Assembly: GCA_054661495.1 (NCBI GenBank)
Contig: BAAFSQ010000282.1
Span: forward strand, 1-13,022
From: Zygophlyctis sp. KS116
Lineage: Eukaryota; Fungi; Chytridiomycota
Length of the DNA: 13,022 bases
Reading direction: 5' to 3'
Every line of letters starts with the position of its first letter. Position 1 is the stretch's first letter. Shown one piece after another: positions 3,116-12,558 of this stretch. The translations under genes and the position numbers were made by a program. The notes below the pieces were generated by a model. The model was not told the origin of the DNA, did not search any database, and was given only the letters and a program-made list of their open reading frames with translations.

Positions 3116-3506
3116 ATGACAAAGATCAAGAAGACAGTGACTCCAGTCTCTCCATCTCTTCCTAGCAAAACTGTTAGGATCTTCTATTCTGATAAGCAAA
3201 AGGGGCATGATCAATTCTTTGTGTATGCTCATGAGGATATGATCAAGAAATGGAAAGAAGGTATTGACTCTATTGCTAATGCAAGATAAATCAATTCCAT
3301 TAGTAGATGTAGTTGATAGTTTTGATGTCTTTGATGTCGCCAACGGTGGAGCATCGGGTAAAGCGTTGCGTCCGACTCACTCTGCGCTCTCAAATACTTT
3401 TGGTACTTCAGATGTTAATCACATCATACCAAAAATTCTTGAATCAGGAAAAATCTTGAATATCACTGCTAAAGGACGGAATGATGTTGGCAAGGAATTG
3501 ATTTAA
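3116..3506 (+). CDS. RTC3: Single-domain SBDS N-terminal (FYSH) fold protein, Rtc3/YHR087W-like, about 121 aa
   Basis: Exons 3116-3260 and 3286-3506; 25-nt intron 3261-3285 (gtattgactctattgctaatgcaag). Spliced protein has FFVYA...KKWKEDKSIPLVDVVDSFDVF...GASG...LSNTFGTSDVNHIIPKILESG, the fungal Rtc3/SBDS-domain pattern. Confidence 0.85.
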
Positions 3507-6484
3507 GATTTGTCTTCTAATAACTTTGAGATTCGAGACCAATCCGATCGCATTTGTAAATATGGTTTAAGTAGTCTAAATTCCACTCTGCTTAAAACTC
3601 CATCCTCTACAATTGTGCGTACATTTTCTGGTTTGACAATGAAGAGAGATCCAATTTCACGAAGTAGATCAAATCGCTCCACTAATGATGATATTCCTAA
3701 CAGTGACATGCTTTCATTGTATTTCTGAATATCTTTTGTAATGATAACAGCACCAACTTGATTAGTTGGAAATTTTTGGAAATGGTCAAGAATCAATCGA
3801 GAAAAACTGACACCAATTTCTGAAAGAAAAATATTGCGATTTTGCTGATCAAAGGATGACTCGGTGACAGATTTAAGCAGATTTATAAATTCAATTATAC
3901 TGGCACATGTCTATGGTTAAATCTTGAGTTTTTACAGGAGTGTAGCTGATTTCTAAATTTGGGAGGTCTTCTTTTGGTTTGAAATCAGATTTCTTTTGTT
4001 TAGATAAAAGACTTTCCAACTTTTTTGTAACAACTATCCAGAATTATACTACTTTACTAATCTTACAAAAGACTGTTTTAATAAGAATAGAATTTAATTT
4101 TGATTCCATTGATGAAATAAGTTCATTCTTGTAAAACAATACATCACGGAGTACTGATTTAGAATGCTTAATGACAGGAACCTTTGAAATTTAGAAACTA
4201 TTAATACCACGCAATGTTGAATATGAACATGAAGGAGAGTAACTACATGCTGAACTATCTTGACAATAGGGAAATATCTAAAATTCGGTTCTGATTTGGC
4301 ATCTGTAGTTTCGAGTTCATCCATTATCCTATTTTAAGAAAACTTTAGCATACATATCTAGCATCAGATTTATATATTCGCTGCCTGATGTATTTGCTAA
4401 TAAAATAAATAATGATCCAACATGGCGAGCTCTGAATTTAAGCAATAAATAGATTACATTAAAGAGGGATGGCATAATTCTTTGCATCTGTTTACTGCAT
4501 CAAAATGAATTTTTAGCATTGTAACGATTGAGTTAATCTCGACTGGGAATCCAGAGGATGCTTGTGCTTTTACTTGTTTATCAGGCTGACTGATTATAGT
4601 CATCATTTCATTTACAGTAAGATTAGTCAAAGCTTCCCTCGTTGAAATTAATGACACCGTTCCGTTTTTGTTTCTCTTATACAATTTGCTATGATTTGTG
4701 TGTAATTCAGTGAAGGAATGCAAAATACTCTTAAAAGAGTCGGCCATTTGAGCATGTTCGACTTTGATATAGCGATCCCCTTCCAAATATGGAATAAACA
4801 AATCTTCAAGAGAATGATCGAGAACAAGGGTCAGTGATGCCTTTTTTGTTGTGTTTGCTATTGTCACCTCATCAAACTTGTGCAGTGATGTCACGAGAGA
4901 CTTTGTTTCAGAATGAAGGGTCTTTAAGGTAACCAAATAATCAAGATTTGAATGCTTTCTGGAGTTTTCAATTATCGTCTCTAAGGAAATTTGGACCTGT
5001 ATTAAGTTTTATCTTTATAAATTACCGATTGCGCGAAAATCCGCTGGATAAGCTGCTGCATTACATATATTGGATTAGGGAAAACTAATGAAATAATATC
5101 CCACTCTGATGCACAGCATTTCTGTATATCTTCATACAATTTTTTGATAGTCTCAGGAACTATAGAGGGGTCATACATCAGTGATCTACTTTTAGAAAAG
5201 GAAAAAATGAATACCCAGAGCCTTCTTCGGCAATCATCGATTCTTCCATCACCCTATTAGTAAAAAAGTCATTCTGGTTCAAATAAGTTTGTATGCAAGA
5301 ATTTCCACCATTAAAGTCGAACAGAACATTCGCATATCTCTAAGCACATCAGTTATATAAACTTTACATTCATCGTATCAAAATCTTTATCGGTCCGAGC
5401 TTGGTCAAACTTTGATAGAAACTCTGTTTCAAAAGCTTCACAATACTTTTCAACATTGATTTTAGCCTATACAATGAATTATAAAAAATAATACGCCTTC
5501 CATTCCCACAATATCTATTTCTTTGGATAAGTTCATAAGTCTTCGAGCTATAACTGCGCTCTAAGATAAATAAATTTATAAAACCTTTCTTTCATTTTCA
5601 ACCCCAGAAGTCTTTAATTCATCAAGTCTTTCTGTCTTTGCATCCTTAAATTCAGTAAAAAATTGTATTAAATCTCTTGCATCTGTCGCCCTAGATCTCT
5701 GGAGATCTATTGTCTCTAATTGATCACCTGAACATCAGAGACGCCAAATAACTTACCAATTTGTATGGCCGTTTTAGCAACAGAACTTAACTGCTTCTCT
5801 ATTGAATAAAATGATGTTTTAAGACCCTTCAAAATATTAGTTGATGTAAACATACGGTAAAAGTTTGTCTTATGTCTTCAAGCTTTTTTCTTCTACCTAT
5901 TTCGGTTGCATTAAATGCATCTTCTTGATCTTCAATCTTTTTTCGAACCTTTTTCTTAATCTTGAGAAGTTCTTCTGTAATTGCTTCAAATGATGATAGC
6001 AGTGGCTTTGGATCAAATTCTAGACTATGGAAATAATTCTAGTTACCTGGATCATTCTTAACTTCAGAGCGAGCGTGAATCTTTTCAACAAACTTTTGAG
6101 CATCATAATTATCCTGAGATCAACAAAGCAGAAATATACCTTGAAATAGTCAGCATTAACCGTATCTTTATAATTAAAGTCTGACTTTGGACGAAATGGT
6201 AACATTTCGTTATTAGTATTGTCAAATCTATCAATCTCCTCCCTTGACATATTTGGAATATTTAGTCTCTGATTTGCAACTTTATTTTCTTTGTTTTTTG
6301 ATACAGGAACCTTAAATGCGTCGCTTACATTCATCGCAACAGATGCCGCCCAGTGTCCGGAACTCTCAACAACCGTCACATCAACTGAACGCGGACTCTC
6401 TTTCTTTGTTAATTCACCATTATCTGCAGCAACCACTTGTGCGAGTTTTCCCCAAAGCTTTGATTTTTTTGGTGAAGTTTCCAT
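3503..6484 (-). CDS. SEC10: Exocyst complex subunit Sec10/EXOC5, about 866 aa, 15 exons
   Basis: Introns on the minus strand: 6139-6114, 6046-6020, 5855-5827, 5756-5728, 5584-5561, 5494-5467, 5367-5340, 5214-5189, 5025-4997, 4457-4432, 4353-4329, 4207-4182, 4066-4034, 3935-3911. The exons sum to 2601 nt in one open frame. Motifs: FDPKPLL, IGDQLETID, LFDFNGGNSCIQ, VFPNPIYVMQQLIQRIFAQ, KQKKSDFKPK, FDLLREIGSLFIVKPEN, YLQMRSDW. The true start is taken as ATG 6484; the ORF track's 6520 is a TTG. Confidence 0.93.
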
Positions 6485-6648
6485 GATTACAAACGTTGAT
6501 GAAGTTCGCGTCTTCGGCAAATTCCAATGTTCAGTGATCGGTTTTTGGCAATTTTAAATAGATTATGATTTAAATTTAGAATTGAACAATATATGAGATC
6601 CATGCATAAGATCTAATCATCATTCATTGTAACCGTTTGTTTTGTACA
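6485..6648. promoter_or_regulatory. Probable bidirectional promoter (SEC10 / LRRC71)
   Basis: 164 nt between divergent start codons, with an AT-rich core. Confidence 0.55.
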
Positions 6649-8340
6649 ATGGCGGAAATTTATGGGACTAGTAAATTCCCGTTTTCATCATGGAAGATCC
6701 AATTGAAAGGAATTATGAATATTCAGGAATTTTTGAGAGTGATTATCTGGAAGGATGTAGATCGCAATCCATTTCACCGTTTCTTTTATCAAGAATTGAG
6801 CCAATAGATCTATCAAAGACTATATCAAATTCCAAACTTCCGCTAGTCAAAAAAAATGACTCTGGAGATGCAACTATATCACCAGAACTTGTCAATTCAA
6901 GAATCTCGTCTAATGATTCCAAATTTAGATTTACAAGAAAGATAAACGTTATCACAAGCGAAGATGAAGTTGTCGGAATACAAGTAAGAGGCTGGCAGAT
7001 CGCATTGCCAATGACTGATATTTTGGTTAATTCTATTTTGGCAAGCTCTACTATTACAGTGTTATGGTGAGAAATCCAATTAGTTTAATTAAAGTCTATG
7101 GAATTGTGGTTTAAATGATTCGCAGGCTAATATTCTATCACAATTGGCCAATTCTTCTAATATTAGAGAGCTGATGATTGATCAAAACCCAGGGATCTCT
7201 GATATTCTCTTTGCCGGCTTCATTGGCGAAGACTCTAATATCAAAACCCTGAGTGTCCGATCTAATGATATCGGGGATGGAGGGGCAAAAGCAATTGCGA
7301 CTGCATTGAAACTTAATAGATCGCTTTCAATATTGAACTTGTGGGATAATCGTATCGGGCGAGATGGAGCAGAAGCACTTGCAGATGTAAATTTGAGAGA
7401 ATTAACCGAAGGGGCTAATAGGCAATCAATCTCTGTTTTCACTCTCGTTGGGAAAGAATCATATAGATGATGCTGCCGTGATTTCATTTGGAAAAGTATT
7501 TTAAATTGTTAATATTAGATATTATCAAATCAGATATTATCTATAGAAGAATTACAAATCAGAAGAAAAGTTGTAGCAGAATGGGAAAAACGGCGTGAAC
7601 TTGAAGATGTAATTATTGTTTGATTTCCTTACTTGAAAGAAACAGAAAAAGGGGATATCTCCTGTAGTCAAGCCTGTTGGAAAAGGCGCGAAGCAAGATG
7701 ATCCTAAAGATTCCAAGAAAACTCCTGCTGCTTCAGCAAAGGGAGTTAAGAAACCCGATGCACAAAAAACTCCAAATCAGAAACCACCAAACAGTCCAGA
7801 AAAAAAATCTACCATTGATGAAAAATCCAAAGGAAAGGATTCTATCAAAAAGAATAGTTCTGCGCCTGCTGCAAAAGGTGGAAGAAAGCAATCAGTAGTT
7901 GAAGACGCTGATGGATTAGCAACTGGAGTTTTCTCTCCAGAGCCTCAGCCGTATGCAGAGGAGCCAATGTATGAAATCAATGGCCAGTGGTATATCCTTG
8001 GAAATCGCAGTATCAATAACTTGGACTTGTCATCCAATGAAATTACTGAAACCGGTTTGAATGCTTTATTAGAAGCGATTAGTATTCAAGAGATTACTAA
8101 TGAAGTTGCATCTTCGTCTGATGGATTGATTGGATTGTATAAGCTATCACTCTATGTAAATACCGTATTTTATTAATCATTTAGCTTAATAAATTTGAAA
8201 CAGATCACCCAAAATTAACTGCACTGAATCACTTGCTGAACAAAAAAAATCCATACTATGCAGAAGATGAATTCATGACTGAAAATTCAAGATTAAGTGA
8301 AGTCTCTACAGGAGACAGACTAAAAGATTCCATAGCTTAA
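6649..8340 (+). CDS. LRRC71: RNI-type leucine-rich repeat protein, LRRC71-like (cilium/flagellum associated), about 509 aa
   Basis: Introns 6671-6696, 7067-7094, 7387-7411, 7496-7518, 7609-7639, 8156-8184; exons total 1530 nt in frame. Recognisable blocks: YEYSGIFESDYLEGC, IQVRGW, LCLWNCGLND, LSVRSNDIGDGGAKAIATAL, LNLWDNRIG, a Lys-rich insert, GNRSINNLDLSSNEITETGL and GLYKLSL. These match the LRRC71 architecture as I recall it. Confidence 0.8.
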
Positions 8341-8345
8341 TGAAT

Positions 8346-9825
8346 TTACGATAAGAGATTCAAGATATATTTCCGCAAGCAATCTTTAAAACGCCCATTT
8401 TCACTACTTGTAATATAAACTTCTTTTTTTAGCCCAGTCCCTTGATCTTCTATAATGATACAATCCATTCCTACTGTAATTCGCAGGTTAATAGGCTGAT
8501 TCAGATTTGTGAATTTAAGCAATTCAAGCTCTATAGAAAAGGATTGATTCAAGGATCCATGAACAGTACAGTGATTCGTAAATCTTTGAAATTCGTAAAC
8601 TACAAACCACAGACAAATTCGTCCAACTTCTCTCATCAAGAGAGTATGTAAATTCAACAATGAACACGGCCATACAATATCTTGAGCCTCTAAAGTCAGC
8701 GTATCACCCTCGGAATCACAAATAACAGAAATATTCCACCTAACATTTAGAAAAATCAAATACCTAGAAAAAAAAGTTACCGACCATTTTGTAGTATATT
8801 GAGCATAATCTACTTCAACAGAATACTCCAAAATTCTGTTAATTTTCTTAAAAAAAGCATCCAAAATATGAAAAATCCTATTTTTTGTCCAATGATCAGC
8901 ATGCGCCTTTATCACTGGCAACATCAACAGAGATCTTCAATTAATTTCAAATAAATTACACAACAGAAGTTGAATCACTAGAAATTCCGCGATTTCTAAA
9001 ATTCCTCTTATATACCTCCAACATTCTATACCTCAACATAATCACTAAAATATTCAACCAGTTATCCTCTTCCAACTCCATATCTTGATTCCTAAAGTTT
9101 CCAACTTGTAAAAACTCAAATCCCATCAAAATCCAGTCATTTCCTTTTTTAAAATTTCTATACTTTTCTTCCAGATCCCCCTTTATCAATAATTCTGTAA
9201 TTTCCTTGTCTAAAACTCCAAAACTCGCATTTTCAATCTCTTTAAAGAGCCCTTGTTCTCTAGACTGTAAATCTGTAACTGAAGAAGAAGTCTTATTTTT
9301 CCATTTTAATTTAAGAGACTCTTCTACAACCATTTGAATTTCTAAATCTTTTCTAATTTCTATTTTAAAATCTAAACTTGATCCAATTTTCCCAAATCCA
9401 TAGTCTAACCAAAATCCTCTAGAGTTTTGTAAACTCCAATTCTGTAATTTTAAATTTCTAACCAAATCTATCCATTTCTCTTGTTCTTTACTAGACTTTT
9501 GATATTCCTGAATTTCTCTAGAGAATTTCTCGAGATTTTTGAGTAAAATATCTTGTTTTACATGTACTAATCTCTTTAAATTCCCTGATTCTGCCAAATC
9601 CATTGTAGATTGAGTAATTCGAAGTAAATCTCCCTTTACCGACTTTTCCAGCAAGTCCAAACAAAGATTTAATTCTTCTTTAGCAAAATAAACCAAATCT
9701 TTCCATGCATCTTGAGATTTTTGACTTGAATAAATGGAATGAGCCTTTACATGGCCTGAAACTTTCTCACTCTCTTCAAGATAATCATATTTAACCTCTT
9801 GTAGAGGATCTAGACTCAACTTCAT
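8346..9825 (-). CDS. MED17: Probable Mediator subunit 17 (Srb4/MED17), divergent, about 476-484 aa
   Basis: Exon 9825-8960, 25-nt intron 8959-8935 (gtaatttatttgaaattaattgaag), then 8934-8346 in frame. A possible extra in-frame 24-nt intron lies at 8763-8740. The motifs MKLSLD, AKEELNLCLDLL and EQEKWIDLVRNLKLQNWSL...LDYGFGKIGS resemble the Med17 W..L..LR..W...DYG...GS block. Confidence 0.65.
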
Positions 9826-10421
9826 TTTTTCTTCTTTTTTTTAAGAGCTTCCTCTTCTCGAATCAATTCATTTTGAATTTCTAATCGATCTTGTTCAGAA
9901 ATAATGTTTAATTCTTCCTTTTGTAAAACTTGTTCTTTGGAAGCGACAGTTTTTTGAGATTTCAACTCTTCTTGCTCTTGTTTTTGTTTTTGAATATTAA
10001 AGAGATTAGACGCTTCATTAAAAATAGAATTTCCCCAACCTTTTTTATAGATTTCAGCCTCTTGCATGACTAGATTAACTTCTACTTCTAATTCAGCTTC
10101 AGCCTTTAGTAAATTATCAAAAACCGAATGAGAAATGGCTCCAGATTGAACTAAATTCTGTAAAGGAGCTTTTTCAGCTCGAACTTGAATTATTCTTCCA
10201 ACATCAGTGATTGCTCTTTTTAATAGAGCTGTTGCTAGTAATTTATGATCAATTGGATCTGAAGGATTATGAATTTCAGAGAGTTCTAGATATCGTTGTT
10301 TAGTTAAATGAGGAGGAAAATAGTTTTTAGAATTTCCTTTTCTAACAGAATAATTTTTATAAACAAATATAGCAATTAGAATTCCAATAATGTAAATTAG
10401 AAAATGGCTCCAGTAAAACAT
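9822..10421 (-). CDS. SEC66: ER post-translational translocation subunit Sec66/Sec71, 199 aa, intronless
   Basis: N-terminal TM helix, then YFPPH..KQRYLEL, ALLKRAITDV.RI, L.QSGAI, AEAELEVE..LV.QEAE..KKGWG.SIF.EA, which is the fungal Sec66 pattern. Charged coiled-coil tail. Confidence 0.9.
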   Translation of the reverse strand: MFYWSHFLIYIIGILIAIFVYKNYSVRKGNSKNYFPPHLTKQRYLELSEIHNPSDPIDHKLLATALLKRAITDVGRIIQVRAEKAPLQNLVQSGAISHSVFDNLLKAEAELEVEVNLVMQEAEIYKKGWGNSIFNEASNLFNIQKQKQEQEELKSQKTVASKEQVLQKEELNIISEQDRLEIQNELIREEEALKKKKKK

Positions 10422-10474
10422 TTTTTTATTTACGCTTTAAAGTTTGGCGTTTTTTTTATTTTTTAGGGATTTTA

Positions 10475-10509
10475 TGGATTTTATTTATGGATTTTATTTA
10501 TGGATTTTA
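10475..10509. repeat. 13-bp tandem repeat TGGATTTTATTTA, about 2.7 copies, upstream of SEC66
   Basis: Copies at 10475-10487 and 10488-10500, partial at 10501-10509. TTTTAGGGATT occurs at both ends (10461-10471 and 10505-10515). Confidence 0.8.
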
Positions 10510-10653
10510 GGGATTATTACAAGAATTACTAACGGTAGGCTGAAAGAGATGAATCTTGATTTATTCTTTCAGTCCTGCATTCACCCCTGCCCTATCTTTT
10601 ATACTTGATCTCTCAAACCTAGTCTAGAAATCTTAAATAGTAAAGTATTTAAA

Positions 10654-12558
10654 CTATTTAAAATGTCCTTCGTGAATACTATTGAAAATGGCAAAAATAT
10701 ACTCTTTAGGAGGAAATAACTGAAATTAATTTCTTTTAAAATTACCTGGAATATAGGTCTGGTTGGAGGTCCTTCTTCATTATTTTGCGTGTATAGTCTC
10801 TTTTTTAAAGTTGTATTATATTCTTCCAAGGCAATCAGGTATTCCTTGTTTTTGGTTCTAAATGCTTTCAATCGTATAGATAGATCTTGAAGAATGGCTT
10901 TATTCTTTAATTCCCTAAAATTTAAGTGATTTAGAAATTACAATGGAATATTTATAAAAATATCTCTCTTGTCTCTTCTTAAAGAAGAACGTTTCATGGA
11001 GGGTTTTCTTTTATCTTCAAGTGTTATTATTGACTTTCTAAGATCATCTTGAGATTTTGTATTTGATTTCCTTCGCATGACTTTCCATTGAATTTCTAGA
11101 CTGTCTGCATACTTTAGAATGACTTTTGATCGTGCATGTTGTATTGCTAAGAAAGATCTGACAAAAGATTGGGCTTTAATAACTGCATATCGATATTTTT
11201 TAACAATCTTCATCAATTTAGATGTATCATGAACTTCTTTAAAGAATGTTCGGATAATATCTGCTGCAGAATGTTTTTGTTGTCGGCGGCGGTTGGCAAG
11301 GAATTTGCTAAAGGCTCTAAAATAAGTGATTAAAAACTTACGGTCTTATAATCACAAACGATTTTTGCATCAAGTCAAATAAAATTCGTTTGCGGTAATT
11401 CCTATAATATCGTTGAATTACTATTGCAGCGTGAGTTCTCTTCATTTGAATTTCTTTTAGTTTTCTAGACTCCTATATTATTAAAAATATCTAGAATTAC
11501 AGTTACTGCTTTTTGCATAATGGCAATTCTACTAGCAATAACTACAATAATGAACCATTTTCTTTGCATTAAATGAAATTTTCCAGATTGTTCTTTTTCT
11601 TTTTGATTCATAGCCTAAAATAAGAGAATGATTTTTACAGCAGTTTCAATTTTTTTTTGAAGTAAACGTTTCTTTTTATAGAGAATCTCTTCATCCATCT
11701 TTTTTTTCCTATCCAAAACACTATTTCTATGAAATTCATTTTCTTCCCTCTTGAATTAGACTTGAAATCATGTACCCATTTTCTTAAAAGTTTTGGTCTT
11801 GATTCAGAAGAGAAAGTAATTGTTATTTCTTGACGTCCGGGTGCTGATTGAATTTTTCTACTCTTATTTTTACTATTGCGATATCCGACTTCAAGATTAG
11901 AGTCAATACAATTACCTATTTTTTCTTTGAGTAGTTTGAACTCTATTGGATCAGATTTTAATAGTTTGATTCGGCGAGAGACTTGTTCAGCGATTTCTCG
12001 GACAGATTTTCTTCCTTTGACTCCTTTACCAACAATAGAATCTTTTTGGATCGGTGGAAGAGAAGAATGTCCAGCAGAAGATTTCAAAATCCTATTTTTA
12101 TCAAGTGCTAATGTTGAATTGCTAAACTTGTCATCGGTGCGCCCGTCCAATATACGCTTTGAGACTTCAATAAGCCTTGTGATCTCTGAAATATCACTAT
12201 TAAAAACATCTTTGAGATTGTTCATTTGCTTTCTAAAAGAATCTCCGGCTAATACCGAAGCATTATTTGATTCAGAATGATCGTAATTTAAGAGATCTGC
12301 AAGTTTACGGTTTAGATGGCTGACCATCAATGACATCTCTGGAAAATAAGATGAATGATCATTAGTATCAGTCCTGATCGCAGGTGCTGTCTTTGTGATT
12401 CTGGAGACAAGAACCAAGTCTTTAGATGTGAATAGATCTGGATCGAAATTTTTAAGATTGGCTGAATCTACAATAGCAGGAGCTGATCGAAGCATTCTTT
12501 CTGGCTCATAAAATAAATCATTACTTATTTCTGCCATGTATTCATTGTGTAGACGCAT
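10654..12558 (-). CDS. Uncharacterised basic IQ-motif (calmodulin-binding) protein, about 573 aa
   Basis: Introns 11915-11889 (in-frame, less certain), 11775-11750, 11638-11615, 11500-11473, 11341-11317, 10941-10915, 10745-10720. Exons sum to 1722 nt and end LFPPKEYIFAIFNSIHEGHFK-TAG. IQ motif HAAIVIQRYYRNYRKR plus degenerate AADIIRTFFK and AVIKAQSFVRSFL. Start codon not independently confirmed. Confidence 0.75.

Follow-up and report, generated by a model that had tools for sequence, protein, structure and literature searches.

On the minus strand of the window considered here, which is the whole 13,022-nucleotide (nt) stretch of contig BAAFSQ010000282.1 from the chytrid Zygophlyctis sp. KS116, the gene SEC66 and a probable, divergent MED17 meet without any intergenic DNA, and the last four letters of the former, ATGA, also open the latter. 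This arrangement is best explained, with a probability of about 0.6, by two independent cistrons, in which the MED17 promoter and start site lie within the 3′ coding region of SEC66 and the 3′ end of SEC66 lies inside MED17. The features on which the argument turns are as follows.

9822 to 10421, minus strand: SEC66 coding sequence, a single exon of 199 codons plus TGA, ending in the lysine run KKKKKK.
9826 to 9845, minus strand: A-rich tract AAAAAAAAGAAGAAAAA, which codes for the lysine tail of Sec66 and supplies an all-A context at −1 to −5 for the downstream ATG.
9822 to 9825, minus strand: ATGA junction, in which the downstream-gene ATG (9825-9823) overlaps the SEC66 TGA (9824-9822).
8960 to 9825, minus strand: exon 1 of the probable divergent MED17, an open reading frame whose N-terminus is conserved from M1 in four relatives.
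8935 to 8959, minus strand: intron of 25 nt (GTAA...AG), predicted from sequence; its removal joins GT+A in frame with the open reading frame 8346..8927.
8346 to 8934, minus strand: exon 2 with a TAA stop, an open reading frame with collinear tblastx matches to the related contig L002 beyond exon 1 of the latter.

The minus strand at the end of SEC66 reads ...GAA GCT CTT AAA AAA AAG AAG AAA AAA TGA, where the TGA is composed of the TG of the MED17 ATG and the A of an invariant second codon for lysine; the MED17 frame is thus the −1 frame relative to SEC66. In the mechanical list of open reading frames (ORFs), those at 9822..10421 (199 amino acids) and 8956..9825 (289 amino acids), both on the minus strand, have four bases in common, and the coordinates and the four-base ATGA overlap given in the preliminary description are reproduced exactly by the sequence and by this list. 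The junction is identical in L032, a Logan assembly made independently for this organism, and is also found in the metagenome contigs L004 and L031 (97–98% identity), for which reason it is not attributed to an assembly error. A fusion of SEC66 to MED17 by splicing was considered separately and rejected, since no usable (GTA-type) donor occurs in the last 100 nt of SEC66.

The upstream ORF is identified as Sec66 (Sec71), a translocon subunit, by the Pfam family PF09802 (E-value 1.1e-29; a score of 103.7 bits, the curated cut-off being 22.1; positions 15-174 of the 180-position profile), and it is the sole Sec66 locus in the 12.7-Mb assembly. Its C-terminal block, LNIISEQ.RLE.Q.ELI.EEE..KKKKKK, is conserved among the relatives, and in all lineages the protein stops at the lysine run, whether the stop codon is an overlapping TGA or a free-standing TAA. 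In yeast, the tail of Sec66 is cytosolic; if the same holds for the present protein, its KKKKKK end (window 9825-9842) fits the C-terminal di-lysine (KKXX) pattern of retrieval to the endoplasmic reticulum.

For the downstream gene, the position of the start codon and the identity of the product are separate matters. The N-terminus, M-K-[LIV]-S-L-[DE]-P-L, is invariant in four relatives (97%, 51%, and 46% identity), and in the most distant of them (L002/L003) an unrelated non-coding stretch of 92 nt lies before the conserved start methionine; because the N-terminus remains unchanged even behind such a spacer, the ATG at 9825-9823 is taken from the alignments to be the true MED17 start. It had been proposed that this ATG is required, the next in-frame methionine being about 75 codons away, and this holds: the next methionine is residue 75, and it is replaced by isoleucine in the relative of 97% identity, so that it offers no conserved alternative start. 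The predicted intron agrees in size and donor with the other introns of this genome (24–31 nt, GTA donors), and the predicted two-exon product has 484 amino acids, compared with 472 for P0007, a protein from assembly GCA_027604625.1, which is taken to be a chytrid, that Pfam recognizes as Med17 (E-value 2.1e-15).

P0007 is also the basis on which the downstream gene was named. A profile built from exon 1 and three relatives matches P0007 with an E-value of 1.6e-4 in a search of 1.84 billion representative proteins, a match outside its own small clade; hhalign against P0007 gives a probability of 91.7% over 107 columns, spanning the YFA+EE..L.LDLL helix and the NW...DYG..GS block; and in the reverse search P0007 matches this ORF only in the whole genome (E-value 6.3e-4). 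Given the profile match and its reciprocal, the gene is accepted as a probable divergent MED17. The exons were searched one by one and not as a joined protein; neither exon, nor any of the four relatives, matches the Med17 family PF10156 even at E<=10, and exon 2 alone matches no family. Searching all six frames of the genome with PF10156 likewise gave no match, and the control genomes gave none either. Searches of PDB sequences, with a single sequence and with a profile, returned only spurious PPR and ComM matches, and the ESM Atlas features gave no support for Med17. An AlphaFold2 model of exon 1 from a four-row alignment is unusable, with a mean predicted local distance difference test score of 35. 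Of the two gene names originally proposed, SEC66 is thereby placed on direct evidence, and MED17 is supported indirectly, through P0007 and without a Pfam call.

At its 3′ end, MED17 is approached by a convergent gene on the plus strand (window 7144-8176), of the ribonuclease-inhibitor type with leucine-rich repeats and split by mini-introns; about 170 nt lie between the two stops, and the same layout is found in L002, L003, and L004.

Whether the overlap is conserved can be followed through several lineages. In L026 (Sec66 74% and Med17 about 51% identical), the ATGA is kept, the sequence being ...AAG AAA AAG AAA AAA AAA TGA with ATGAAAGTT. In L005 (Med17 51% identical), only 14 nt remain upstream, AAAAAGAATAAAAAATGA, and their simplest reading is KKNKK followed by a stop and the same overlap; in L028, which has the most divergent Sec66, the sequence ...AAG AAG AAA TGA is followed to the end of the contig 46 nt further on, and the overlapping ATG opens a MED17-like MKLNL... 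Both L005 and L028 therefore probably carry the ATGA junction too. Other relatives have separated the two genes: L002/L003 (Sec66 67% and Med17 46% identical) have a TAA stop and a 92-nt spacer before MED17, and L027 (Sec66 69% identical) has a TAA stop and then at least 57 nt without a MED17 start, while gene calls on contigs suggest a spacer of about 164 nt in the L027 lineage. Conservation of the overlap is accordingly partial: it is kept in L004, L031, L032, and L026, probably persists in L005 and L028, gives way to a spacer in L002/L003 and L027, and is not universal wherever the SEC66–MED17 pair is kept. Two further metagenome scans yielded no additional relatives. The Sec66 tree lacks the resolution to separate an ancestral overlap with later spacers from a repeated origin of the overlap, and both fit. 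The L002 spacer (L002:5909-6000) itself contains a perfect 15-nt direct repeat, AATTAAAGATTTAAA, in two copies 54 nt apart, and a 12-codon mini-ORF; the direct repeat hints that the two genes once abutted and that this spacer may have arisen later, by insertion or duplication.

The adjacency of the two genes is a different question from their overlap. Window positions 3136-12558 are wholly collinear with L002:3423-12656 (about 9.5 kb) at only about 45–70% amino-acid identity, L002 being from another metagenome, and in the genome of P0007 the Med17 gene does not adjoin Sec66. Because the whole 9.5 kb is collinear within the clade and the pair lies apart in the chytrid of P0007, the SEC66–MED17 adjacency is regarded, on gene order, as general synteny and not as a specially preserved pair.

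The background against which a zero-length spacer has to be judged was obtained from a sample of 213 kb of the 12.7-Mb assembly, consisting of contigs L006-L025 and the window (200 kb were fetched), by means of a home-made gene model based on codon usage with intron chaining. In this sample, coding density is about 79%, and introns are 24–31 nt long with GTA donors and occur at about 0.8 per kb. Divergent starts are a median of about 190 nt apart; convergent genes have a median stop-to-stop distance of 26 nt, and 11 of 43 such pairs overlap. Among about 110 candidate same-strand boundaries, the distance from stop to ATG has a median of about 180 nt and tails off continuously to zero, and about one boundary in 20 has a spacer of 10 nt or less. 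SEC66/MED17 is the sole true −4 overlap among them, and no −4 class stands apart from the continuum of short spacers. A second apparent −4 overlap, on contig C1, turned out to consist of two exons of one SNF2-type helicase gene, a false positive of the gene model. The shortest same-strand pairs were checked with Pfam and are listed below.

L021:7166-7171: NMD3 followed by a membrane-anchored GT49-like gene, gap of 1 nt.
L018:2381-2389: acyl-CoA dehydrogenase, which ends at profile position 148 of 150, followed by an ORF, gap of 4 nt.
L025:6077-6088: ORF followed by an isocitrate/isopropylmalate dehydrogenase that matches from profile position 1, gap of 7 nt.
L011:3490-3504: ICln-type gene followed by an ORF, gap of 10 nt.
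A further pair: ING/PHD gene followed by an ORF, gap of 28 nt.

Since tandem distances tail off to zero and pairs occur at 1–10 nt, the SEC66/MED17 overlap is the extreme of a spacing continuum and no isolated oddity. Moreover, as the median distance between convergent stops is 26 nt and overlaps are frequent, geometry dictates that 3′ ends of genes here must reach into adjoining genes in any orientation, whether or not polycistrons are involved. On the other side of SEC66, a 177-nt spacer must house both its promoter and the 3′ end of an IQ-motif gene lying upstream; within this spacer, at window 10471-10509, lies a perfect tandem repeat of three 13-nt units, TTTATGGATTTTA (plus strand), bordered by CCCTAAA-like motifs of the telomere or telobox type.

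The nucleotide context of the junction is informative about both initiation and the presence of embedded elements. At the sampled gene starts, A is favoured at −3 to −1 (about 50% at each position) and is found at +4 in 44%. Because A follows ATG at 44% of starts, an ATGA arises easily once two genes abut; the preference for A just before the start means that the lysine tail, with its run of A, gives MED17 a good initiation context. Ahead of the sampled starts, ATG is depleted over no more than about 40 nt, which points to short mRNA leaders in this genome. Upstream of the MED17 start, ATGs occur at 46, 193, and 242 nt, leaving 46 nt free of ATG, and the nearest of them opens a mini-ORF.

9869 to 9871, minus strand: ATG of a two-codon mini-ORF (ATG AAT TGA) that shares its frame with neither gene, and the sole other ATG in the 193 nt upstream.

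Translation of MED17 by leaky scanning from the SEC66 start is excluded, because four further ATGs lie in SEC66 between its own start and that of MED17. As a group, genes that run directly up to the next one downstream show no ATG depletion in their 3′ ends relative to controls (n=7). No motif resembling the TGGGA of a termination upstream ribosome-binding site (TURBS) occurs in the 110 nt upstream of the junction in the window or in L026, and over the same 110 nt the comparison of the two reveals no nucleotide conservation beyond coding constraint; synonymous sites in this last part of SEC66 vary freely, which argues against any sequence-specific embedded element. The 161-nt junction RNA folds no better than shuffled sequences (z = −0.37), and the A-tract and the AUG are unpaired in the predicted fold. 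Neither the comparison of the window with Rfam nor a scan for sigma-70 promoters and terminators gave a relevant family or result.

Under the favoured explanation, these observations would be connected in the following manner. Extreme genome compaction in this chytrid would have pushed SEC66 and the divergent MED17 into direct contact, such that SEC66 terminates at a TGA made by the MED17 ATG and the A of the following lysine codon. MED17 would be translated from its own short-leader mRNA, with a start site and promoter located toward the end of the SEC66 coding sequence, and the SEC66 mRNA would end within MED17; these transcript start and end positions are deduced from geometry. The codons of the lysine run serve doubly, as coding sequence and as an A-rich initiation context. 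Among the relatives, both protein ends stay unchanged at spacings of −4, 92, and at least 57 nt, and this persistence of the same protein ends on either side of a spacer argues that stop/start contact is tolerated in the clade and not required for MED17 expression. Of the two alternatives raised in the preliminary description, a promoter buried in SEC66 is the one that fits the 79% coding density, the tandem gaps of 1–10 nt, and the convergent median of 26 nt.

Several points weigh against this explanation. No promoter motif was identified within SEC66. The zero-spacer state persists through deep divergence (about 51% Med17 identity, and probably more), and such long persistence would also fit a functional coupling of the two genes. 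At the same time, the packing sample covers 1.7% of the assembly, and the gene model that was applied to it has known false positives.

The other alternative, a bicistronic SEC66–MED17 mRNA on which ribosomes would end SEC66 at the UGA and restart at the overlapping AUG with the aid of the unstructured A-rich tract, is unlikely, even though a number of observations speak for it. The stop/start overlap is exactly of the AUGA type; it has been kept in at least two diverged lineages, and probably in a third, over a long time; the AUG stands in a good A-rich context and is predicted to be unpaired; and the lysine codons of the overlapping lineages are richer in AAA than those of the spaced ones. 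Furthermore, yeast can be induced to carry out 80S-mediated reinitiation without cis-elements (PMC11952965). Against this stand the length of the upstream ORF, at 199 codons, the lack of a UGGGA or TURBS-like motif and of any conserved nucleotide element in the 110 nt upstream, and the lack of a special RNA structure at the junction. In eukaryotes, ribosomes that have translated a long ORF normally reinitiate very poorly. In addition, the other abutting pairs have gaps of 1–10 nt and no overlap, and the pair is kept in relatives with spacers of 92 nt, with a small ORF of its own inside, and of at least 57 nt; since the spaced relatives keep the gene pair, coupling is not the general mechanism of the clade. 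In its broader form, namely that SEC66–MED17 is an anciently conserved bicistronic unit translated by AUGA reinitiation without a TURBS-like element, and that other near-abutting tandem pairs use the same route, the proposal is more doubtful still.

Far less probable is a polycistronic primary transcript that would be cut or trans-spliced near the AGs just upstream of the ATG to give monocistronic mRNAs. All lineages do have AG dinucleotides in the 15 nt before the ATG, and near-abutting genes on the same strand are many in this genome; however, those AGs belong to AAG codons for lysine, the sampled starts have no enrichment of an acceptor-like signal ahead of them, and processing at that site would cut the SEC66 mRNA short before its own stop codon. 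Spliced-leader trans-splicing is not known to occur in fungi.

An artefact or a wrong gene model, whether through an assembly error or through a different true stop or start, is more remote again: Pfam does not call MED17 and the AlphaFold model is of no use, but independent assemblies carry the identical junction, diverged relatives show it again, amino-acid conservation of both protein termini reaches as far as the junction, and the last 100 nt of SEC66 lack a GTA-type donor. Least credible of all is a −1 slippage of ribosomes on the poly-A tract, by which a fraction of them would make a SEC66–MED17 fusion protein, for although MED17 lies in the −1 frame and AAA AAA (nine A in L026) before the junction is a slippery context, a membrane-anchored Mediator subunit is biologically senseless, the spaced relatives are unable to make the fusion, and MED17 has a conserved methionine start of its own.

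With independent cistrons and an embedded MED17 promoter as the preferred reading, the locus has a bearing beyond this pair of genes. The overlap shows how much compaction a free nuclear genome outside microsporidia and nucleomorphs can undergo, and it leaves the gene of a Mediator subunit without any upstream non-coding DNA, a state that has persisted through a long span of evolution. Should MED17 have a transcript to itself, the coding sequence of another gene contains its promoter and start site, and this locus, together with several hundred similar pairs (extrapolated from the sample), lends itself naturally to the study of minimal promoters and terminators in eukaryotes. Should the message be bicistronic instead, MED17 would represent one of the rare cellular instances in which reinitiation follows a long ORF; were this true of the other near-abutting pairs as well, it would amount to a cellular, genome-wide, prokaryote-like coupling by eukaryotic ribosomes. 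On either reading, gene finders and expression studies applied to such genomes must permit intergenic regions of zero length.

Comparison with known systems places the junction as follows. Operon coupling in bacteria through ATGA or TAATG has the identical four-letter stop/start overlap on the same strand; here, however, the genes are eukaryotic, nuclear, and functionally unrelated, no mechanism of the Shine-Dalgarno type is at hand, and a shared mRNA is only hypothetical. Viral termination-reinitiation resembles the present case in having a stop/start overlap after a long upstream ORF, as in the AUGA of caliciviruses, which is accompanied by a TURBS, and the UAAUG of influenza B M1/BM2; the defining upstream motif in viruses is a UGGGA complementary to 18S rRNA. 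It differs in that neither the window nor L026 has a UGGGA within 110 nt, and no conserved upstream element or structure accompanies the overlap here. For the hypovirus CHV1, a UAAUG termination-reinitiation is reported (PMC2699510). Among eukaryotes, green algae have polycistronic nuclear loci that are reported to be translated by leaky scanning (PMC7896298, PMC11291117). These loci are similar in that two unrelated conserved proteins are encoded back to back on one strand, whereas leaky scanning needs an AUG-poor upstream region and SEC66 has its four further ATGs.

The closest likeness is to microsporidia, such as Encephalitozoon cuniculi and Antonospora locustae, and to nucleomorphs, which have very short or negative intergenic distances. 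In microsporidia, transcripts run into adjacent genes and only one gene is translated (PMC2742732); likewise, transcripts must here enter neighbouring genes, as deduced from geometry, and in those compact genomes every gene is believed to have a message of its own for translation (PMC2742732). Microsporidia that are related to one another also keep their gene order to a high degree, as happens here over the 9.5 kb shared with L002. The difference is one of setting, because the present genome has about 12.7 Mb, belongs to a flagellated fungus of the chytrid type, and is very intron-rich, whereas microsporidia are nearly intronless. Overlaps and overlapping transcription are thus known from compacted eukaryotic genomes, and SEC66/MED17 is a new conserved example of them in an intron-rich chytrid lineage.

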